This document shows, piece by piece, positions 32,600-47,356 of a DNA stretch of 64,000 bases. This DNA is from Lepidodermella squamata (Eukaryota > Animalia > Gastrotricha), in contig JBLDXI010000020.1 of NCBI GenBank assembly GCA_047495785.1, forward strand, positions 1,178,001 through 1,242,000, given 5' to 3'. Each line of letters starts with the position of its first letter. Position 1 is the stretch's first letter. The notes under the pieces are model-generated. The model did no database searches. It was not told where the DNA came from and saw only the letters and a list, made by a program, of their open reading frames with translations. Made by a program: the position numbers and the translations under genes.

Positions 32600-35050
32600 A
32601 AATAAAATAATTGATATGGCTTTGAGTTGGATTTCAGGTCATGGTAAAAAAATCTAAAACAAGCAAGTTAAGGTGGAATTTTTTGCAATTCATGGCATCA
32701 GATGAGAGTGATGAGTCACTTCCTGCGCACGAATTCAAGCGCGAGCATATTATATTATCACGGTTCATCGCGATCATCATAATCATTTAGGCGTTACCAA
32801 GTAGGATGTTAGTCACTAAAGCTCAACTGGTTTGTTTGTCATCATAAAATAATAGACGCCTATTCATTGGATTTTTCAACGAGATCCTTATCGACTCGGA
32901 GGCCCGAAAAAGCTCAAGTAGGCGAGATTAGACTGTAATTAATATAGCGTTGGCGGCCAGTGCCACACTTATATAAGGCCATCTATTGAGGAAAACACCA
33001 GCAGCGAGATAGCGTGAGTGTAAAATGGGATAATGAAAGTTTGTTAATTTTTTGACAGCCAAGTGCGCATCAGCGGGAAATGCGAGAAAAGACGCGACCG
33101 AGTGCCATAAAGATCCTGTTCTCAAAATATAGTAATAAATCATGACTGAAATGTTGGCTAATTAGATGGCAAAATAATCCGATTAATTTTTCTACCAGCA
33201 TTAATTAATTATTCACGTAAATATTTGCTCGTCGACTTATCGAAGTTCACGGCCGGCTTAAATTTCGCCGGCACGTGGCGCGTGTAGATCCAAGAAGTAC
33301 GCGCGCAATATCTTGTAAAATTTTATCTAAACAGAAAAAAAAACGCAAAAAAACCCTGAAAAAATGCGCAACCGGACATGAGGTACAAAGTAGCCTGATC
33401 AATCGCGCAAAATTCGTTATGAATGCTTCTGTCAGTATTGTTGCCTTAGATAGATGTTCTGTATAAGAAACGCGGCCGGTATATTTTGGCGAGCGATGAA
33501 AAAGGCATCAGCATTGGGATAAAAATAACCTCGGGCTGGCGTTGTTGTTATAGTTGTAGAAAAGCGTAATGTAAACAAGTATATAGAAAAATAATATCAC
33601 AAAAAACGATCGAATCCGCCCGCGAGCACCGTGGTTGTAGCCGGGTGGAAAACTACCGGTGCAGACTTTTGATAAATTGAGAATGAGAAAATTCTGTTTT
33701 TTAATTAACGATTGAGTCAAAGGAAATAATAAGTTCAAGGAGAATTTTTCAACCTTATGCGGATTTTAATTATTAAAAAGTTTATTTTATGAAAATTTTG
33801 CCAACCTGGTCTAACACTTGGAATGGTCCCCTGTTTTTTCCATCCTGTCATCATGGGTGATAACTAAGGGATGGTCCAATGGTAGTATATACTACGCAAA
33901 AAACACGGCCCGGTGCGTAGCCGTTCTTCAATGCCATTATGTTTATTTCAACAGTAGGTCGATTATACCACCCATCATACGCTTTATATCTTGCAACTCA
34001 ACGCTACAGCAGGTAGTCTGAAAGGTACCAATTTATTACACAAACAGCTAACGAGCGATGCAAACACGCCGGTGTTTTTTTCTGCGCGATATATACACTC
34101 GAAGGGACGTTACTCAACGCGCAAATAAAACGCACATAATGGCTCTGGGTGACTAAATAGGGCTTACATTTTTTTGCAGTAAAAAATTGTTATAATATAT
34201 GATGTAAGAGATATAGATTACATTATACCTACACCGAAAAGGTAAAACTGGAGTTTAAGGTTGAAAAACCACGCTGCGTTTATTTACGCCCTTGAGGCAA
34301 CAAATGTGAAAACAAACCAGCGACTTCCGCCCGGCGTGGCACCGCTTTTTAATATTATTATTATTATTATTGCTCATCTTAACTTGGCACTGTTAATATT
34401 AGTATTTTATTTCGCTCCATTGTTTTGGCGCACAATTTACAATCGCCACCCTTCAGACTGCCCGGCGTTATACTACTACTACCTATAAAGCGATGAGTCA
34501 GCACAACCGCTTAACATAAGCGATATTTGCTTGAGAAGGCGCTGGGATGTGCGATGGAAACAAATAATAATAATAACATTTATCTAAATTGTTATCATCA
34601 TCACAAAAACCAAGGTATTACCATAATATTACAAGCTATGTTTGGCCCAGCGGCTTTTTCCTGGCATCTGAATAGCCTTGCTATACTGAAACACAAGTGA
34701 AGAGAGCTCCACAAGCTACAACCGTTTTAGTACTCCGCAGCATCCGGAGATTAACAGTATACAGCGTACGTATACCGAAAGACAAGATAAGTTATGGCCA
34801 AGTTTGTTGTTGTTATTTTGGCATCTGTCCATCTGGAGTGATAAGGAAGCCGTAAAACTACGCGGGAAGCGCGGATGAAATGAAAAATATTCAGAATTAC
34901 TACTTCAAGCATAATACCCAAAACGCTAAGTTTATTTTCAATCAACTTCTCAGCTATGAAAAATAGCGAAAAAAACAAATATTCAATTAATTTGCATTTG
35001 CGTTGGGGATACAAAAAATTCAACAGTAAATATTATTCGCCATGTTTGAT

Positions 35051-35555
35051 TTAATTGGTTGCTGCTTCCGTTTCAGCAACTACAGCATCGGTATCGGCTT
35101 TCGTGCTAACAATTTTGAAATTACAATTGTCCGTCTCGCAGCACTATTGAATAATACGAAAACTATTTTTCTAGAAAAATCTCAGTCGATAAGCTAACCT
35201 TGAAGTTCATCAACTTGAAATTCGTAAACGTCGGTTGAATGCAAAGCGGGGAACACGATCGGAAGTAAAATCTGAAAAATCAGAACCGATTTGAATGAAA
35301 ATTCTAGATTTTTCCTGCATACTCTTTGAGATTGATAATCTGAAGATTTATGTTCGCCGAAGCTTCCAGACAATATTTAGCCAGGGGTGAACAAGTTCGA
35401 TTGGTACCCTTGTCCGTTCCTATATGTCAAAATATTACTACAATCGAAAATTCAGAAATTTTCTGCCACAAACCAGTACATCCAACACATTCGTTGCAGT
35501 ATTTTGGCGCGGCTGAAGCCAATGCGATCAACATGGAAAAAATAAGAAGCTTCAT
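35051..35555 (-). CDS. Secreted Ly6/three-finger protein 5 (10 Cys, no GPI signal); exons 35555-35474, 35419-35323, 35271-35199 and 35143-35051
   Basis: Hand translation MKLLIFSMLIALASA-APKYCNECVGCTG TDKGTNRTCSPLAKYCLEASANINLQIINLKE FYFRSCSPLCIQPTFTNFKLMNFK CCETDNCNFKIVSTKADTDAVVAETEAATN*; splice phases agree; missed by the ORF track. Confidence 0.88.
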
Positions 35556-35888
35556 TTTGAAAAGGTGAAATTCAGGTTATAAAAATTCAGAGTGATAGCA
35601 AACGCAAAATGGCAATGCGATGGCATAATTTTGCGGCTATAAATTGGCCTAGAATAAATTATCGCTTATTGTGGCGAACCTTGCCAAATCGGCTAATTTT
35701 CCGACTGGGTACCAGAAAGCATGTCGTGACATGACAAAAAGGCTGGAAAATTAGCTAGCTGGGCTGATTTATTGCGTCATCAAGTGCGTACAGGTTAAAT
35801 TATCATTGTCTGAACATAAATACGATGCATTTTAGGATAACGCCCACCTTAAAAAGAAATGTCATTTGTTCAAGTTCCTGGTGAGTTT

Positions 35889-37216
35889 CTAACGCGGATC
35901 CGTCGAGCAGTAGGTGGCGCCCATCGGGCGTTTGAAGTCGAGTTGAGAGTAATCGCCCTTCGTCCAGAATTTGCGATCTCGCTGCCAAAATCGGCTAGAT
36001 TTGTTGTCGTCATCCGCCGTGAAAACTACCAATTCATCGTGCTTCAAATTCTTGTCGATAAGAACCTGCGAGGGTGAATAATCGGTGGGGGCATTATCGT
36101 CCGAAAAAGTAACCGATTTCTTCGCATAGGTTTGACTGTCCGTGTACATTCTGAACGCGAGAACTGACGCCATGAAAACAGCGGCGAAAATCGTGAAGCA
36201 GCAAACTAGGGTGATGAGAAAATTAGGGCTGAAGGTAGCGGCCGAGTGCGATAGATGCACAGTTGCGCCAATAACCGCGGCGGCTTCTTCAATTTTCTTG
36301 CAACTTGCCGGGCAGTCCTGACAGGCACAGCTGCGATTAGTAACAGGTTCAATCTCGTTACAGGCAAGAGGTGAAAATTCGAATCTTGTCTCCTCGGATT
36401 CAGGAAGAGCCGCCAGACCGAGGCGAAGGGCTGGGATTCGATTTGCGACGAAGTTCATCAAACCAGCGACGGTCATCGGGGCTGGGAAGCCTTTGTCGTA
36501 AACAGCGCTAACGTGGTAGGCCGTGTTTTGGCACGACTCGGCTATCGACTCGAGGGTCGATTTATCAATTGCTACTCGCTTAACTGAACCGACGTAGCTA
36601 TGAGCGGAGCACGTGTCGTGAGGCCGTGTTTTAGCTAGAGGGTGTCGATTTTTCATGATAGCCGCAAGCTCAGGGTCGATTGGCAGTTCGAACTCGACTG
36701 AGTCAGACGGCTGGTCGATTTTCAGGCCTGACATGAAAGTGTCTTGGTCCGGCGAGCAGGTGATGCCGCATAGGAGATGCGCCAGGTTCGACACGCAAGA
36801 CGGGCAGTGGCCGGCAATCACCTCCAAACGCGCAAAGTGGCGGTTCAAATTTTTAATCTGATGCGCCGAGCAGCATGTAAGAAGGGGTGCTTCGGTATCT
36901 ATCAAGAAATTTAAGCATATCGAAATACGAAATCGAAAACAATAAGCCGACCATTTTTCGCGAAAAGCCTCGAGCATTTCTTCAGCAGGAAATTGGCGGC
37001 CTTTTCGTCGTCTAATGGCCTGGCTCTACCTTCGTAGGGACATGGCATGGCGATATCGGTCGCCGGGTCGGTGTAGCATTCATTGTACCAAACACAATCA
37101 GCATTCAACAAGCTGAAAAGCGAGCTTGAGGCCTGCAAAAAAATATAAAAAAATCGGCGATTACAAAACAGAAAACTCACGATGATGGTGATGAATAAGA
37201 GATTTCGCTGGATCAT
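35889..37216 (-). CDS. NPC1 N-terminal-domain-only single-pass membrane protein; exons 37216-37181, 37132-36952 and 36898-35889
   Basis: Signal peptide; ADCVWYNEC...CPYEG...TCCSAHQI...HCPSCVSNL..LLCGITCSPDQ...CNE...CACQDCPASC; one TM; about 100-aa tail; stop at 35889. Confidence 0.85.
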
Positions 37217-40085
37217 TTTTTCATTGATAATTTGAATTAAAAAGACTCGGAGTTTTTCAGTTGGAACTTGACTGGTGTATCGGCACGTGCCGTATGAATT
37301 TTAGCGCGCTCGCCGCTAGCCAAGAGGCTAAAAAAATGTTACGCAACCAGGTTTCAAGATTATTCTCGGCTTGTTTAAGAAGATAATATTCTTCCGTGAT
37401 TCGCGTATAAATAGCCGAAATATGGTTTCTCGCTTTCTCGAACTTTCGCAAAGCATCGTGAAATTAGTTCAGCTGTCAGAGTCAAGATTGAAATAGGTAC
37501 AAAAAGTTAGACCGAAAATAAACATGAATAAAGTAAAAAGCTAATAGCGCTTCATCCATAATTTTTAGATCACAAAATCATCAATCCTAGCTTCTTATTT
37601 GAAATATTCGGTACCGTATTTCGAAAATGATTTACAAACGAGCCAAACAATTATTGTTTCAAAAAGGCCTAAACAGGGAAATTCGAACAATTAATTGAAT
37701 CAAAAGTTGGCCTAGGCCTTTGGAATGCCTTAAATTTATTAAATACCGTCAAATGTAGTGACTTTGACATATTAAAAATCGAAGATGGTGTGATGAAGAC
37801 CCAAAAATGGGGTACCGTTTGATAGCCTGGAGGAAGGGAGTTCTGAAAATTGCATGTGATTTCTATTTTTATCGAGCTATTTGGGCAATAACCAAAGCCG
37901 AAATAGAAGAAGAAATCAAAACTTCCCCAACTGTTCGCCTGTTAGTTTCATGTCCCAAAAGGGTTGTCCCAAAAAACGTGTGTATTATTATACCCTTACA
38001 GGTTGGCCTTTTTTGGGGTTAGCAGACGGTGAACTATTCACGGGGTCTTTATCATACCGGCTTCGATTTTTAATATGCGAAAAACACCCTTACAGGCTAT
38101 CAAACGACGGTACCTCCTGTTTATCAGTCATCTATTTCCTCATGTTTTGCGATTAGGAGAGTTGAGCTATTCTCGAATCTTCGCTAGCTATATCGCGGAC
38201 TCGATTTCAAGTTTCCCGCATTCTACTGAAAATAACGTCGTAAACTTGCCAGATTAGACTCTCCAGCGAAACCTCCGAAACATGAATTTCGAGTTACCAT
38301 AATTTGGGGTGACATCAGCGTAGGTTATTGCGATCGACTTCGCAAATCTTCGCAAATTGACAAGCTAACCCGCTCAATATGGATGTCGCCGGAAAGCCAG
38401 TAACGAGTAGAAACAGATGTTGCAGTCAAAGTAATTATCAGGTACAAGCATGAATTGTAGTGGACAGGTAACGGTGGTCAAAGTCACCCGTTACCGTTGC
38501 ATAGCCTGTGAACAGAGTGGTTCGAAAATGACATTCGATTTCGATTTCGATCGCATGGATTCATTTGGTTAGTCACTCAAATTCTACCGGAAATCGAACT
38601 TAAAAAAAATTCCCCTTAACTTTACCTGTCATTTTATACTCAGTAATAAGTCGGATTGGTGTACATGCTGGTGCGCACATCTAGGCCTGGCTTTCCTTGG
38701 GCTATGCAGCGGTATCCCACTCATGGGGTCTTTACCTTGCCGGCTTCGATATTTGAATGGCCAAAGTCATCCCAAATTACGGTACTTTCGGCATGATTTC
38801 GAGTTACATTTTACTTCAAATTTTACTACCGGTCTGATGCATGAAAAATGGAGACAAACGACTTGAGACAAAATTTTCCTTTCTTTATTTATGAATGATC
38901 CTCGCAATTTTTATATCCTGCGGCAAAGCGTTCATTCAATGAAACACTTTCATAGACATATCTTCCACAAAGTAGTATAGTAGTAGTACATTCGACAGTT
39001 CATCATCCAAAAAATGATCTGGATAATAAACTCTGTGCATATACAGAGGCACGCAAACAGACAATTCAGTCGTATGTAAGACAATATGATCTGCGATTAT
39101 AGAATATTATTATTATTAATAGAATTTCGAAACCAAAAATGCACATCAGGCGCGGAATAGATTATTTTGTTATAATTGGGTTAATAATAGAATTTATAAT
39201 CGTATATATGTACATAAATTTCCGTTGCAGACTCAGATAATAATGATAGTATAGAAGGCGATGACAGGCAGTTTCGTTAAAAATGTGGTGGTATTACATA
39301 TTATTTTCTAACAATTTCATCATGTGACGCGAAACAAAATCTTGCGACAAATTTTCGTGTTTCGATGCCTTGTATCGTTATAACATCGCACATATCGCAG
39401 TTTCAGAACAACAGTGAAAAGAAGGTTTTTTTAAACAGTCAGTCAGAGATTCCAGGTCAATAAAACGTGTTCTATTATGTATCACCTGCTATATTATATC
39501 TTGCACGATAGATCTACAAGTATTTGTATTATATAAAGATGGCAAAACGGCACAACGATTTGAGGAGAATTCATGACATAAGCTTTCAGTTCATTTTCGC
39601 GAAAATACTCGATAAATTGCATAATCTGATTTAATATTACGATTCCAACTTTTTTTTATGAGCACAAGGGTGTCTACGAAAATTAAATGGCGATTTGGGA
39701 CTGGCACCAAGAGAAAATAAAATAGGTTCTTCAGCTAACGTCCACAACGTTTTTTTACAAATCTGTTATTTCTGCTATTATTATCATTTTTACATCAAAT
39801 CATTTCAGAAATGAGATCAGGAAATATTCAGTGCGTTTTCCTTCAATCAATCATTATTACAAATAGGATAGCGATGTTTTTGTAAAACCCTCATGCGCGT
39901 TGCATAATAATCTATCTTTTCCGATATTATTATTATAGCATATTAGAAAGCCGCAACTGGAATGTCAACGGATCAATCGATTACCTTCCTCCTCAAATCC
40001 AAAAACATTAATTAGTCGAATCAAGTCAATTTCAAGTGAGCGGTTCCTGGGCAGAGAAGATCTATGTCTTTATGACAGGATGCGG

Positions 40086-40112: not shown

Positions 40113-40819
40113 TGCGTTTTCCATGAGAAGAAAGTGATAAAAAGAAAAGCGATCAGTATAAATGAGCGTTCTTGTTAAATCATTATGAGGAAGAATTTTC
40201 AAGTTTACCCGAAAGTGTCGCAATTTCGGTATTTGTTTCACGAATCAGGGGCGCAGCGTTGAAGGAAAAGTGTTGTTCGGCGTCTATTTTTTCATCATAA
40301 ACACGGATAACAATATATAGGTAAGTAGAATTGAACCGGGCGAGATTTTGTAATAGCTGATGATTGCGTATTTCATAACAAATTGGCCCTCGTATATCTG
40401 AATGGATTTTTATATCAAAAAATTCTTTCACGGTAGCAAAAAGCGTGCTAAACAAAGGTATAAATATTTGTTTAATAATATCGTTATATAATAATATTAT
40501 CGGGTTTCGGTTGTATAGTGGTCTCTAAACACGGCAAAGCCGTGTGTAATAATATAATCTGCGCTGACTTGAATTCACCATATTAATTAAATTTTTCGAT
40601 TTTCACAGTCATGGCCTTTTGATATGAATCTTCTTGTAACAGTAAATGGTGTGACGACAACAGTATGAAAAACTTGTGGCAAAAACGACGTGTTATACAG
40701 ATAGTATTATAATTTTTCCCTTTCTTTTTTGCGTCTCATCGAGATTCAAGTTGTTGATGTTTTGATGATGATGATGAAGATGGTGTGGTTGTTGATGACG
40801 ATTCATTCAAGGCGGAGAT

Positions 40820-43800
40820 TCACGCCTCAGACGGCAGGTCGCAGCAGTCACGGGCGCTCATTGACACGAGCCGGATCGACTCGGCCGTGTTGCTGCGGTG
40901 ATGCCCGCCATTCACCGGCGCGTAGCGAATGTTGGACGACGAACCGCCTGGGGGCAGGCCGCACGCCACGCCATGCGCCACGCCAGTCATGTGCCCGGCC
41001 GCGCAGCCGCCGCCCTTCTGGCCGAACATCAGCTGCTTATCGCTGGAGTGCAGCGATTCGGCGGCGAGAATCCGCGTCAGTCTATCGTTTTGCTGGTACC
41101 TCAGTCGCGCCTTGTTACCGGGCGGGCCTGAAAAAAATTATTATTTTTATCATTATTTGCGCAACATAAACACGCATTCATACGTATAAAAATATGACAG
41201 GTTTTATAGGTAAACAGTCTACACGCCGAGAAAAAAAAAACAAGCTTATCGCCTCGTATATCTGTAGCGCTATTGGTCATATAATTGAGTTCATATGTGT
41301 GGGTATGTGTGGCATAGGAATGTTTATCTAACGTGGGTTTTGGCTGCGGGTAATAATCATTTCAATATGTTATTAACGCCTAATCAACCCGGGTTTTAAT
41401 GCGTGCCAGAGGAAACGGGGGCTGCTACAAGTGAAATATTATAAGAATGGCGCCTGAAGCGAAAAATGGCGCGCGCATCAAGCCGGCCGCGGAACAGATG
41501 TTTCACGCGGCCGCCTTAATAACTGACACGCCGATTAGGGTGAACGATAATTAAGGAAGCGGAGGATAGAAATGCTGCTGCTGCTGCTTACCGATAAAGC
41601 TGAGGAATGCCGGCAAGAAAACGAGACCATGAGCTGCGCCCAGAATGACGATCGCCAAGAACATTCTGAAATAATATACCTGTAGCGAAAAAAGTAAACA
41701 CATCAACGTATAAATTGAGGTGGATTTTTCGCAATTATTACTTGAAAGAGCCGAGATTTAGCAAAGGCAAGAATAACGATTCCGCCCAATTTCGTGAGAG
41801 TAATGCCGGAGAAGACCGATGAGCCAATGTGCGTCACGGTGTCCGTCATGCGACTCAGCCGCGTCGGCTGTGTGCTAATGGCGAATTTGCGAACCACGTG
41901 CGAGCAGAACTCGACGGCAATGCCGATAGACATGACGAGGTTGACGAGCGAGATGGCGTTGAGATCAATGTCCCACAAGAACATGATGCCAAACATGTCG
42001 ATGACAATCATCGTAATGACGACAAGCGTGATGAACGCCGAGTAGAAGTCGAAGCCGAGCAGCACGAATGAGACGAAGAAAATCGCCGCGCCGCACAGGC
42101 CCAAATTCGTCATAGTCATCTGAGCCATATCGACGTATTGCTCGTAGAACACGTAGAAGCTCGAATAGGCGAACACCGAGTAGCCAGTGCCTGATAACGA
42201 TTCAGTGAATTCATCGGCTATTTTACGCGACTCGCGAACAGCTCCGATAAAGTCATCAGAGGTCTTCAGCACAGAATGCCAGGCCATGAAATAAGTCGCG
42301 CCTATGTCAGGATTTTCGCCCATTTTCATCAACTCAACCGCGCCTGAATACGCCGCGTGACCGCCCTTCGAGCACTTTTCGTTCGGATTGTCGTGTAAAA
42401 AGTAGTCGATGAAGTGCTTGAAGTCTTGTCGCGATGGGCGCATCGTGCTTTGATTGTAGTTGGTCGCGCATGGCCGGTATGACTTGGTAGGATCGCGGCT
42501 GTATGACGGGCAGAAATTGCCAGAGTCTTTCTCGTAACCGCAGCACGCAACCTCGGGATTCAGCCACTCGATGTAATCGTCGACCCAAGACATGGCCGGG
42601 CGAGCGATGAAACTGTAGTTTGACAACTTCGATGCCAGTGAAATTCGTTCCATCAGCGAGTTTTCATCGCAGCCAGGCAGTGAACATATTTTGTTGATCA
42701 TTTTCGGGTCTGAATAGTCGTAACCTGAGCGGACAACAAAGTAAACCGGAGGGCCGACGGCGAGGTACTTTTCAAGGTCTTCGAAGTATCGCAACAGGTA
42801 GGAATCAGTTGGCATCGCCAGTTTCTGGTCAAGTCCAATGCGCACGTGTGGAATAGCGGCCATCGAAAGGAACAAAGTTCCGACGAAGAAAACCACCTGA
42901 AAATAAAAAATCCACCTTAAACTTATTTTGTTTCATTTTTTGGATCACATTAGTTTTTCGTCACATTTCCGTATTATACGTAGAGTGCACGCAAACCTGC
43001 CAACCTGCCACACCTGGTGCATCAATATATCATCGCCGTATAATAAAAACCAGAAAAAGCGTAGAGCGGAAACCTGCAGCCGTTGAGTAACAGCAGCAAT
43101 GAATCACGGGATTTTTTATGCTCCAGAACCGCCCAGTTTTCTCCTACTCCACACACTTTCTCAAGACGCAAGCGGCGCTGAATTACCAGCGCTGTGGGAA
43201 TACAGAATAATAACGCTGCTATCTCTGTTTTTTATGCCACGGCTTTGTGAAGCCGCCATTTTTTGCGCATCTTCCAATTACTAATGTGAAGTCTTATATA
43301 TGCGCATCCTATACACGCATTATCACAACGCGAAACGGCCTCATTTCGTTCTACAAAACGCCAAATAGGAGCCATCAGTCATTCGGGAACAAAGCGAGGC
43401 CAGAAAAAACATATAACGCCGATCGAATATCGACTGCTCTCTGCATAGTCATAAAACTACAAAGCGCGCCACGCCCTGATGCGCCCACCAAACGAGCCAA
43501 GTTCGTCGGCTCGATAACAGATTGAACCCGTCTGTTTTTGTTTTCACAAGGTAAACAGGATTGTTTTTTCGTCCCAGTAAGCGATGCCAAAGATTTGAAA
43601 CGTGACGCGAATTTTTGAGCCATTTAGCAAGAGGCACGCGAGTGCACTCGCCGGTGTGGTTGGCAGGTATCTATTATCTTGAATATGACGTCTTTCAAAC
43701 AATTAACCGAGTCGCGGGCATTGACAACTACACGCTTCGCTAGCAGAATTTAATACATCCGAGCACTCGCTACCCTCGCTCTCGCTACTCTATAAAGAGC

Positions 43801-46800
43801 GAGTAAACATCGTCAATGCAAGCTAAAGCGCAGACTGGTTTTTTTGTGTATTAAGCTGGATGTTTACCGCGTTAAGCGGCGACCGATACTACGATTAATG
43901 CTACTATGGTGAAACAAAAAACGCTGCGTCAAAAAACGCGCATGTACTCTCGGCTCATCACGCCACCGGTGCGCGCTACAAAGGATAGGTCGATCGCTGC
44001 CAAGGCGACGCGACAACACACGCCACGAAAAAAACGTGAGGCAGCGGCGGGCGTTGTCTGTCTCATGCTACGAGATCATTGAGCGCGGGCCGTGCACTCA
44101 CGTCATTATTAGTGCTTAGCCTTATTTACGCGACGAACCGCAAAAAAAGTAGTAGGCTGTTAGGTAGGTTGGTAAGGAAATAAATTGAACTAAATCTACG
44201 GCTGCTACTTGGCAACAAAGACACGTTAACCTGCCGCCACGCGTGAGTTAATTCGAACAAGTGGCGCGGAGCAACACGTGCTCCATTAAACAAATTAGCT
44301 AGTCAAGTAATGAATGGATAAAAAACTCACGACTATGATGCGAACGCATGGGAACGACAGAATCGGCGCGTAGAATTTACGGAACAGGCGGAATAACATG
44401 CCACCTTTATGCTCGCCAGGTACAGATCCAGGCGCCGTGCGACAACAGCAGAAAATGTCGGGCCTCGAGCTCTGAAATATGATACGAAACATAGCAAAAA
44501 ATCGTTAATTTCGCACTTATTAAAAATCCGCCTTAAAATGTACCTTCATGCGGCGTGCGTCGAAAGTGAGCATAGCGATGAAGGCGGTCATTTGCAGGAA
44601 GAAGTTGAGAAAAACGGCCGTGCCTGCGTACAGCGAGAAAATGTGAACGGCGGGCATGTTTGACAGGGCGCCGAGCAGAAAAGCGATCGATTCTGAGAAG
44701 CTGGTCAGCATCATCGAAGGTCCGAGACGTCCGACAACGAATCCAATGCGCTCTTCAATGGTCACATCAGCCACGTACGGCAGGCGTTGGTAAGCCTGGA
44801 CTAGAATGAAGATATTGTCGACACCAACGGCCAGAACCAGGAAAGGCACTACTTCCAGAATGATCAGCGTAGGCGGGATTCCGGTATAGGCGTACAGACC
44901 CAAGGCGGCGGTGACCGAAAGCAACACAACCATAACTCCGGCAAGACCTAGGGTAGCCTTGGCGTTGATAACGATGTGAAGCAGCTGGCTGGGCTGGTAT
45001 TGGCCAAGAGCGACCGTCACGTAGACGAACATGATCAAGTACGAGAGGAGAATCGTAATTTTATCAGTATCGCTCTGCCTATCGATTTCGTCTTGAATCG
45101 ACCGCTCAGCGCGGAAGGTTACGCGGAAGGTCGAGTTCGGATGGCTGGAAACTTCGTCGGAGATGTTGGTCATCATTTCAATGAACGCCTTCTCCCAGGC
45201 AAGCGCCGGGCCATTCTCATCGTGATCGACGTAGTTTTTAACCGGGAAGGTCAGAATGATAGCTGATGAATTGAAATACTGCTCGCCAGGATAGCCACCG
45301 AATGCGAGATACGGCGCGACGATTCCGCCAAATTCTGCCATGCATTCGTGCAGCTCACCATCAGCGCCGTTCGAGCCGACATTCGACGGATTTTTCACGC
45401 ATTCATGCAAATGGTCGAGGTAACGATCGTCTTCAGTCCATTCTTCAATAGTCTTGGCGTTGTTTTGGAAGTATTGAAACACGCTCAAAAACAGCGAGCC
45501 GTTGTTGCTCGGGTACATTGGTTTCAGCGAGATATCGTCAAAGCGGACACGTTCGCCATTGAACTCAACTTCTAGGTTGATGATTTGCTGCTGCATTTCG
45601 AAGATTTTCTTGAAAATTTCGCGCTCAAACAAATAACTGCCCAGCATATCTCCATTCACGATGGTACCTAGGTCGTGGAATTGCGGATTAGGTGGCTGTG
45701 GCTTCACCTCGGTGATTATAATTTGAGAGGTGCGGTAGAATGGGCCGAAGTGCTGATCGAAGTAGTCTTTTTCAACACGAGCGCGGCTATCTGGAGCGGA
45801 CCAAAGCTCAACAGGATCGACTAGAGGCTTGCGATTTAGGGCAAGGCCACCGGTGAGCGCAGCGCAGATTGAAACGCTGAAGATCATGACCAGAACAGGG
45901 TGACGGGCGCAGAACATGCCCCAATCGCGAAAGCGCATTTCTAGCATATTTTCAAACTTGGCGCCGAATCTTTCCGTGCACGTAGTTTTGACCGACTCGT
46001 TCGTGGCGTAAATAGCCGCAACCGCCTTGGATTTCTCAATTTCGCACAGTGAATTCGTGCTTCCGGCGACGATGATCTCATCCTGAGTGATAAATCGACG
46101 GCTTCGAAGCCTGCGAGCGCAGACAATGCGGTAAACAACGGCGAAAATCAGAATGCTGCCGGTGAATATCGCGAAGCCAATCATTGCAGCAAACAAATAA
46201 CAGTCGATATTATAGAACTTGCACTGGTGTTGTAAGGCCGATGCGGGTGGCGGTGGAAGAGGGGCGCAACAGGCTGGACAATCTGCGCAACTGCATCGCA
46301 TCCGAGATCGCGGCTCGGTTTCGTTGCAAGCATACACTTTATACTTGATAGCGTTATCGTCGCCTTCAACAGGCTCGAATTTCATCTCCATTGGTACGTA
46401 TGAGTTGGTGCTAGGTTCGCCAATGAACTTGAGAAGTTTCTCGATTGTGGGATCACTGCCAACAATGATTTCCAAAGCCCTTGTTCCGGCCATTTGAACG
46501 CTGATACACGATTGAAGAACTCCTTCGATCGTAGCTCGGTCGACAAGAATCGAGCCAACTTTTTCGACGTAAGGCCCGGGAGCATCAACTTGGCGCTTGC
46601 GGCGACTGAGAGTAGGCAACGTCGAGGTAGCTTCTACAGGTTCCGCAGACGGAGTTTTATCGTCATGAGCTTCAGTAGAAAGCTTGGTTAACTCAGCAGC
46701 TACAGTAGAGGTTGCAGATTCACCATTTATATGCTCAGATTTTTCGGCAGACGAGTCCGTTTGAGTTGAAGAGGACAATTCAGTCTCAGGAGATGTTGAC

Positions 46801-47356
46801 GCACTTTGTTCATGGATTTCGGCGTGAGTTGTTGAATCGGCTGGTGAAGTTTCTGATACCGCATCTTCTAGCGCATCTTCAGAAACTTCTTCGACAGGAT
46901 GTTGCACGGACAACTCTGACATAAATGAAGATTGATCTTTGCTGCAGGTGAAGGCGCAGAACAAATGAAGCATATTCGAAAAGCAAGAGGGACAGCGGCC
47001 CACGACAGCGCGTAGTTTTTCGATGTTGCTACGAAGCGTGTGGATTTGAGCAGCAGAGCAGCATGTTCGAAGTGTGCCATCCTGTTCTCGGGAAAATAAC
47101 AACGGGCAATTGTTCAGCAGGAAATCCGCCGCACTAGTATCGTTCAATATTTTTGGGGCGCCATTATACGGACAGGCTTGAAATAGCTCAATAGAGCCTT
47201 TCTCTGACCGATGGCAATTCCCATACCAAACACAATCAGCTTGCACAGAAGAAAACAACTGGAATAAAAGAAATTAATAAAATCAAATACTTATCCAGTC
47301 CAGATTCTCACCTGATAACAAGACAAAAAGCCAAGAATTAGAATACAATGTTTCAT
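40820..47356 (-). CDS. NPC1: Niemann-Pick C1 cholesterol transporter; exons 47356-47312, 47258-44544, 44471-44331, 42896-41742, 41679-41592 and 41127-40820
   Basis: [10 protein letters not shown]; [27 protein letters not shown]; [19 protein letters not shown]...GPSM; [14 protein letters not shown]; GPPVYFV; [21 protein letters not shown]; [12 protein letters not shown]; YYFRM. Confidence 0.97.

Follow-up and report, generated by a model that had tools for sequence, protein, structure and literature searches.

What could an animal gain from the sterol-binding domain of NPC1 when it is encoded apart from the transporter body? The question is raised by a gene in a 64,000-nucleotide stretch of the genome of the gastrotrich Lepidodermella squamata (GenBank assembly GCA_047495785.1, contig JBLDXI010000020.1, forward-strand positions 1,178,001 to 1,242,000), hereafter the window, in whose numbering the coordinates of this locus are given. 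This gene, called here the small gene, runs from 37216 to 35889 on the minus strand. Read on the reverse complement with its three exons translated separately, it encodes, from N to C terminus, a signal peptide, a cysteine-patterned NPC1 amino-terminal domain (NTD), one transmembrane helix corresponding to the first helix of NPC1 (TM1) and a cytosolic tail of 87 residues (Table 1). The product is a type I single-pass membrane protein with its disulfide-rich NTD facing the lumen or the outside. The novelty lies in the architecture: a known domain is set in an NTD-TM1-tail arrangement that originated through partial tandem duplication and has been retained.

The first point to settle is whether the gene truly ends where it appears to end. 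Four public sequencing runs were compared with positions 34001-40000 of the window. Over the gene region run X3 has the character of genomic DNA, with even cover and no joints; runs X4 and X1, which come from two independent studies, resemble transcriptomes, covering the exons of the small gene and of its neighbours and leaving out introns and intergenic DNA. Contig 23 of run X4 contains both predicted exon joints, with CT..AC borders that read GT..AG on the minus strand. Contig 19 of the same run carries 19 untemplated T before position 35753, and this T run represents a minus-strand poly(A) tail because the genome at that place reads ...ggaaaatt and has no run of T. The site falls 15 nt past an AATAAA signal and the message ends 136 nt beyond the stop codon; the protein therefore terminates there, and no exons for a sterol-sensing domain (SSD) follow. 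A preliminary description of this DNA, made from its letters alone, had proposed an intact spliced gene with signal peptide, NPC1 NTD, TM1 and tail, on the same strand as a full-length NPC1 and 3.6 kb downstream of it, and the gene model, the Pfam matches and the splicing seen in X4 bear this out; the tail is somewhat shorter than the 100 residues or so then estimated. That description also found no middle luminal domain (MLD), SSD or carboxy-terminal domain (CTD), and the mapped 3' end, which shows no link to SSD exons, agrees with it. Profiles of the SSD (PF12349), Patched (PF02460) and NPC1_MLD (PF22314), searched over the whole contig, match only in the neighbouring NPC1. Downstream, the transcript that follows comes from a small cysteine-rich gene with splicing of its own and, on the other side, an apparent minus-strand poly(A) site at 38863 sets the small gene apart from the upstream NPC1 transcript. 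Missed SSD exons are thus excluded as an explanation. Lacking MLD, SSD and CTD, the product of the small gene cannot itself be a transporter of the resistance-nodulation-division (RND) type.

Expression is accompanied by constraint. The public runs represent other strains or close relatives, at 95-99% identity, and 18 of their differences in exon 3 were itemised: 15 are synonymous and three non-synonymous (S>P, I>T and I>L). The list comprises the best-supported differences only, and 17 of the 18 lie within the NTD. Exon 2 has one changed codon, at the end of the signal peptide. With 241-282 synonymous sites, the ratio of non-synonymous to synonymous polymorphism (pN/pS) is 0.06-0.08, with a binomial P of about 1e-6 to 1e-7 against neutrality. 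Neither the lack of expression nor the neutral evolution that the preliminary description had allowed for is observed: the RNA is spliced and polyadenylated, the gene is kept under purifying selection, and we hold it to be almost certainly real and functional.

The identity of the domain was established on exon 2 (36953-37132) and exon 3 (35892-36896), both on the minus strand, for which searches, folds and scripts were run separately. Exon 3 matches the Pfam family NPC1_N (PF16414) at 2e-19 and 70.7 bits (cut-off 27) over profile positions 53-231, and exon 2 matches it at 5e-6 and 26.8 bits over positions 2-48, so that the two exons jointly span positions 2-231 of a 244-position profile and qualify as a family match. 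In a sequence search of solved structures (PDB), exon 3 finds NPC1L1, yeast NCR1 and human NPC1, with a second stretch of alignment that spans the CxCxxCxxxC cluster and TM1. An AlphaFold2 model built from a 31-row alignment, which is of exon 3 only and is without the first 60 residues of the domain, gives the domain core a predicted local distance difference test score (pLDDT) of 85-95, the membrane helix one of 97 and the tail one of about 40, the only helix predicted in the tail being a short one at residues 300-309. The top Foldseek matches of this model are 9f40_A (yeast NCR1 NTD with ergosterol; TM-score by target 0.55) and 3gkh_A (human NPC1 NTD; 0.57), together with the NPC1L1 NTD (3qnt), all at a probability of 1.00 and with TM-scores by target of 0.46-0.57 across the top matches. 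Residues ~222-248 of exon 3 form the sole hydrophobic segment and the only Kyte-Doolittle window above 1.6; the model places the membrane helix at 224-259, and alignments match the segment with TM1 both in NPC1L1 and in the neighbouring NPC1.

The cysteine framework tells the same story. The ectodomain holds 17 Cys, 16 of which align with the framework of the family and with the neighbouring NPC1, four in exon 2 and 12 in exon 3 (C8, C9, C31, C34, C43, C47, C122, C179, C190, C192, C195 and C199). The claim that the NPC1 pattern is kept holds for these 16, and needs amending for the 17th (C96), which is absent from the ortholog described below, where its place is taken by Ser. The equivalent of the human C177-C184 pair is missing, as it likewise is from the neighbouring NPC1 and from several other NPC1s. 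By profile, by cysteine framework and by predicted fold, the gene belongs to the NPC1_N family.

Where did such a gene come from? In a paralog search over the whole genome (121 Mb, 151 contigs), the adjacent NPC1 came out closest to it (E 3.7e-15, 46% identity over 67 residues, in the CC..CSPDQ block), and no paralog of the tail was found. Beyond this genome, an exhaustive search of representative sequences returned 169 matches, only one of which, P0001 (295 residues, 37% identity), falls below 1e-30, with an alignment running from the NTD through the helix and into the tail. The gene for P0001 is complete on a metagenome contig of 1834 nt (L019) and has two exons, the first of which encodes the signal peptide and the first four Cys and has no intron at the intron-1 site. 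Its single intron occupies the exact position and phase of intron 2 of the small gene, and its second exon reaches an in-frame stop after a tail of 68 residues, beyond which lie 346 nt of non-coding sequence. At 34-37% identity overall, this ortholog keeps all 16 domain Cys, the helix and the Trp-rich tail motif. The preliminary description had singled out intron 2 as an extra intron, and it is indeed absent from the neighbouring NPC1, but it is also old, since the ortholog has it at equal place and phase. As for intron 1, said to share its position with NPC1, both introns are phase 0 and lie inside the signal peptide (that of NPC1 being 53 nt long), and they differ by four codons relative to the first Cys.

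The sample that contains P0001 contains as well an ortholog of the neighbouring NPC1 (P0002), and the divergent WD40 neighbour seen in the window recurs on its contig. Identity is 61% between the two NPC1 orthologs, as against 34% for the small-gene pair. A maximum-likelihood tree pairs the two small genes at 99/99, their long stem measuring 1.93, with terminal branches of 1.34 and 1.40 compared with 0.45 and 0.48 for the NPC1 pair. Together with the neighbouring-type and C15-type NPC1s they make up a clade (81/83) whose internal order the tree does not settle. From the ortholog pairs and the tree it follows that the duplication predates the split of the two species. As the tree singles out no sister of the small genes, descent from the neighbouring NPC1 rests on best similarity, on a shared insertion site and on tandem position. 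These sequence comparisons give good support to an old tandem duplication of part of the adjacent NPC1, with retention of the copy, and the earlier view of the gene as a preserved, old partial duplicate is upheld by its closest relative, its expression, the excess of synonymous differences and an ortholog of the same architecture. A word-index protein search gave no match with exon 3 and, with a profile of the two orthologs, only P0001; a scan of metagenome loci gave no further relatives. As it stands, the family consists of two members, strain variants apart.

Three parts of the protein bear on what it might do. In the NTD, both orthologs have a Gln that matches human NPC1 Q79 in an alignment without gaps; this residue is nearly invariant in alignment A3, and nearby hydrophobic positions are kept too. 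Q79 of human NPC1 reportedly bonds the sterol 3-beta-hydroxyl, a finding attributed to Kwon et al. in 2009. The second part is a lineage-specific segment of 45 residues within the NTD, which is the best-conserved part of the small gene: identity with the ortholog is 60% in this segment, 35% in the rest of the NTD, 16% in the linker plus transmembrane helix and 21% in the tail. At the same site most NPC1s have a short loop and the neighbouring NPC1 has an acidic insert of ~110 residues. The third part is the tail, whose motif has F303, W304, D307, K309, W311, D315 and Y316 invariant in alignment A1. No similarity was detected between the tail and the TM1-TM2 loop of NPC1 (score 22, shuffles 21.7), and Pfam assigns no family to the tail of either ortholog. 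Attention had been drawn to a YxxL motif (DYSQL) in the tail. YSQL is present, as the sole YxxPhi, but it reads YRIE in the ortholog and a YxxPhi occurs in 64% of shuffled tails; the motif therefore carries no weight, and it was rejected as a sorting signal, being neither conserved nor beyond what chance provides. The tail was also searched for [DE]xxxL[LI] and NPxY, and neither was found.

The preliminary description suggested a sterol receptor, a sensor or a donor of the NTD in trans, roles that are plausible for this protein. Of the readings considered here we lean, at slightly less than an even chance, towards an NTD that is tethered to the membrane, binds lipid and serves the endo-lysosomal sterol pathway in trans. 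Within endo-lysosomal or apical membranes, the NTD would bind a sterol or some related lipid, the lipid possibly being received from one of the many NPC2-like ML-domain proteins of this genome, and would present it in trans to full-length NPC1-type transporters, as engineered human NTD-TM1 does; partners would be bound, and the protein sorted, through the lineage-specific segment and the tail motif. This proposal is favoured by the retained equivalent of Q79, by the NTD-TM1 precedent (PMC6062155) and by the availability of possible partners, as three complete NPC1 genes are present in the genome, along with at least 16 loci for NPC2-like proteins of the ML-domain family (PF02221), several of them in tandem clusters (e.g. 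C13:3274791-3279441 and C45:37338-64400).

A number of observations count against a sterol donor of this kind. A genome search for an NPC1 without NTD, which would need such a donor, found none. In human NPC1, replacing both P202 and F203 by Ala abolishes cholesterol binding and trans-complementation (PMC6062155), and this Pro-Phe position, which lies among the least conserved regions, is P-A in the small gene and Q-I in its ortholog; in the neighbouring NPC1 it is P-M. The best-conserved element of the protein is the lineage-specific segment and not the sterol-contact motifs that were checked, and the tail has no conserved canonical endo-lysosomal sorting signal. The fold covers exon 3 alone. 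Judging by branch lengths and by the 34% and 61% identities, the NTD of the small gene evolves about three times faster than that of the neighbouring NPC1. Finally, one allele shows six differences in 124 nt at the start of the tail (36027-36150); these stand outside the itemised set, so that the evidence of constraint extends to the NTD but not to the tail.

Two other functions deserve to be weighed against the tethered sterol-binding domain. The protein may have become a neo-functionalised receptor, which would keep the NTD as a scaffold, bind another ligand or a protein partner through the 45-residue segment and signal, or be sorted, through the Trp-rich motif, with no transfer of sterol. 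This is unlikely on balance, if far from negligible. It accords with the higher conservation of the segment than of the rest of the NTD, with the absence of the Pro-Phe pair, with the long branch that follows the duplication and the fast terminal branches, and with a tail that is unrelated to the NPC1 loop yet has a conserved motif of its own; the fold family, moreover, binds other small ligands, the folate receptor and Juno being weak fold and Pfam matches. It is harder to reconcile with the retention of the sterol-hydroxyl Gln and its surrounding hydrophobic helix residues and of all the disulfides that shape the pocket, and no search indicated a partner or an alternative ligand. Rather improbable, in our view, is a negative regulator or buffer that competes for NPC2-delivered sterol, or dimerises via TM1, and so damps lysosomal sterol export. 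In favour of this, the small gene has the domain and TM1 of NPC1, is its tandem neighbour and is represented, like NPC1, in the RNA data sets, and human NTD-TM1 alone does not transport (PMC6062155). Nonetheless, no evidence of co-regulation emerged, and the poor conservation of TM1 between the orthologs argues against a specific intramembrane contact.

The remaining alternatives would deny the gene a function or a boundary of its own. A truncated copy beside its parent, evolving fast in a genome with other partial copies of NPC1, might be a transcribed but functionless remnant of the duplication; yet its frame is intact over three exons here and in a relative with only 34-37% identity, no domain Cys of the shared framework has been lost, synonymous differences outnumber non-synonymous ones by 15 to 3, and the transcript is correctly spliced and polyadenylated, all of which make a pseudogene very improbable. 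Less probable still is that we are looking at the 5' part of a longer NPC1-like gene with SSD exons missed. Nothing apart from a domain order like the start of NPC1 speaks for this, and it is contradicted by the poly(A) tail that follows AATAAA, by an in-frame stop conserved in the ortholog with non-coding sequence beyond it, by a next downstream transcript that is a gene in its own right, and by the lack of any SSD, Patched or MLD match downstream on the contig.

The small gene is not alone in encoding an NPC1_N-only protein. Contigs C3, C15 and C17 of this genome also carry NPC1_N matches that have no SSD close by. The match on C15 (1401678-1405367, locus L002) is in an open reading frame (ORF) at 1309-2706 in which NPC1_N (1.6e-34) directly joins NPC1_MLD (3e-23), with no TM1 or TM2 between them; this partial NPC1 copy has no SSD nearby, and a full NPC1 lies on its strand ~10 kb further downstream. 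At the start of C17 (2317-27886, loci L008, L009, L010 and L018) there are five diverged NPC1_N-like copies in both orientations, each followed by a hydrophobic segment, with the nearest SSD 3.7 Mb off. They may be a family of NTD-only membrane proteins or else pseudogenes, the latter being considered because four of the five matches contain stops or introns. On C3 (3678850-3682422, locus L005), a minus-strand ORF at 1030-2043 encodes an NPC1_N-like domain, a helix, CGCCCCC and a second hydrophobic segment, and no SSD was found on that contig.

Looking for NPC1_N-only membrane proteins in other taxa, as the preliminary description had recommended, recovered not only the ortholog P0001 but also non-orthologous proteins, some of which may be fragments. 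The clearest is P0010 (290 residues), from an unrelated eukaryote, encoded at 586-1458 on L025 (a contig of 8613 nt from Logan ERR10899947). It has a stand-alone NPC1_N, a signal peptide, a Thr-rich linker and a hydrophobic C-terminal end that could be a glycosylphosphatidylinositol (GPI) signal or a tail anchor; the neighbours called on L025 have no recorded Pfam family, and so no SSD is called nearby. P0024 and P0053 resemble P0010. Atlas clusters of ~290-350 residues, named 'Niemann-Pick C1 N terminus domain-containing protein', come from ciliates and rotifers, and some of these may be fragments; Atlas feature and shape searches returned generic NPC1_N clusters only. Two short NPC1_N matches, P0004 and P0040, were set aside, as their contigs of 1.0-1.3 kb are too short to tell complete genes from fragments. 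Literature searches found no described natural NTD-only NPC1 protein.

Taken one step further, these observations invite a bolder and, in our opinion, doubtful proposal: the small gene could encode the free-standing sterol-loading subunit of a natural 'split NPC1', in which lipid would pass from an NPC2-like protein to NTD-TM1 and thence in trans to NPC1 or other Patched-family transporters, and it could be part of a wider, undescribed set of NPC1_N-only proteins that includes those on C3, C15 and C17. If that were true, hand-off from an NTD to another molecule would be a physiological mechanism and not just an experimental result. How cholesterol passes from the NTD to the transporter, and whether it does so between molecules, is still debated, and the evidence for hand-off in trans has so far come from engineered fragments in cultured cells only. 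A natural, expressed and retained gene for NTD plus TM1 would show that the module can be useful alone, and would provide a naturally occurring case in which to test complementation and binding and to map partners. More generally, partial tandem duplication would appear able to split functional sub-genes off from NPC1 genes, apparently on several occasions in this genome.

Table 1. Features of the small gene and its likely parent, in window coordinates
Feature	Position	Strand	Evidence
Exon 1: start codon and first 12 codons; n- and h-regions of signal peptide	37181..37216	-	translation; X4 contig 23 enters 31 nt
Intron 1, 48 nt, phase 0, GTGAGT...TTTTTTGCAG (ends GCAG)	37133..37180	-	X4 joint 37131/37180 (cut +1; skips 48), CT..AC
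Exon 2, 181 nt: end of signal peptide (..LNA/D), start of NTD, 4 Cys (CVWYNEC..C..C)	36952..37132	-	Pfam, alignments
Intron 2 ('extra'), 53 nt, phase 1, split codon for Asp	36899..36951	-	X4 joint 36898/36952 (skips 53), CT..AC
Exon 3, whole, with TAG at end	35889..36898	-	translation
NTD part of exon 3 (residues 1-205): CC..Q, CxxC, C, C, then C and C-x10-CxCxxCxxxC	36282..36898	-	Pfam, PDB, AlphaFold2, Foldseek
Lineage-specific segment within NTD (exon-3 residues 56-100)	36597..36731	-	alignments A1, A3; pLDDT low, 49-76
Single transmembrane helix, positionally homologous to NPC1 TM1	36153..36233	-	Kyte-Doolittle, AlphaFold2, alignments
Cytosolic tail, 87 residues, acidic, Ser/Thr-rich, predicted disordered except for one short helix	35892..36152	-	pLDDT ~40
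Conserved tail motif F-W-x(3-4)-D-x-K-[FY]-W-x3-D-Y (exon-3 residues 303-316), overlapping DYSQL	35949..35990	-	alignment A1, BLASTP
Stop codon TAG	35889..35891	-	sequence; ortholog stop at equivalent place
3' untranslated region, ~136 nt; AATAAA at 35773..35768, poly(A) site ~35753	35753..35888	-	X4 contig 19
Neighbouring full-length NPC1, likely parent	40800..47356	-	closest paralog in genome

The surroundings of the small gene have features of their own. Within the window, exon 2 of the small gene can be aligned to residues 21-54 of human NPC1, to its ortholog and to the neighbouring NPC1, which lies upstream on the same minus strand, from an ATG at 47356 down to ~40.8 kb. The first exon of that NPC1 is at 47356..47312, a large exon at 47258..44520 encodes NTD, TM1, MLD and SSD, and more exons follow to ~40.8 kb. 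Its acidic insert, at 46584-46907 on the minus strand, is Ser/Thr-rich and ends in the dibasic sequence RRKR, and P0002 has a shorter acidic insert that ends in RRMKR; to judge by these sequences, a furin-type cleavage site may thus be present inside the sterol-binding domain. Between NPC1 and the small gene, positions 38400-38800 have a depth of ~1600 in the genomic run X3, compared with ~80 elsewhere (~20-fold), with inverted and skipping joints, and look like a repeated, probably mobile, element. From 38863 to 40000 lies a transcribed stretch without a long ORF, which RNA-like contigs of X1 and X4 span contiguously; it represents a ~2-kb 3' untranslated region of NPC1 or else a non-coding RNA of its own. 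Downstream of the small gene, the small cysteine-rich gene (34996-35555, minus strand), termed Ly6-like in the preliminary description, is expressed, with X1 and X4 both showing the removal of its three introns, which measure 51-55 nt.

Comparison with known systems defines the position of the small gene most clearly. With the NTDs of NPC1, NPC1L1 and NCR1 (PF16414; 3GKH/3GKI, 3QNT and 9F40) it shares the domain, the disulfides, the fold, the sterol-hydroxyl Gln and a TM1-like helix; it differs from these proteins in having no MLD, SSD, CTD or Pro-Phe pair and in possessing the 45-residue segment and a novel tail, and its identity to NPC1 NTDs outside its own lineage is only ~20-25%. The adjacent NPC1 and P0002 are closer: the adjacent gene is the closest paralog, lies on the same strand and has in common with the small gene an insertion at one site of the NTD and a phase-0 intron in the signal peptide, whereas it has a full transporter body, the dibasic-ended insert and a markedly more conserved ortholog. 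Other NPC1_N-only proteins (P0010 and the Atlas clusters) resemble the small gene in having NPC1_N as a lone domain, a signal peptide and a C-terminal hydrophobic segment. They are not its orthologs, matching it at E ~1e-7 in the CC..CSPDQ block only, and P0010 has no cytosolic tail; none of the NPC1_N-only database entries has been characterised, and many of the short ones are fragments of full NPC1 genes. A more remote likeness is that to the folate receptor, riboflavin-binding protein and Juno (PF03024), a distantly related, cysteine-rich and membrane-anchored ligand-binding fold to which matches are weak; at 15.9 bits the product falls below the Pfam cut-off of 29.8, and the Foldseek matches have E >1, so that it is not a member of that family.

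The closest functional parallel is an artificial one. Trinh et al. (eLife 2018, PMC6062155) engineered human NTD-TM1 with a grafted lysosomal targeting tail, and this construct reaches lysosomes and restores cholesterol export together with an NPC1 that lacks its NTD, whereas the human NTD fused to TM13 brings about no such restoration (PMC6062155). The engineered protein carries a targeting sequence added by design, and the small gene is natural and has no recognisable conserved targeting signal; nonetheless, the layout of the two is nearly identical, comprising an NTD, the first transmembrane helix and a short tail.

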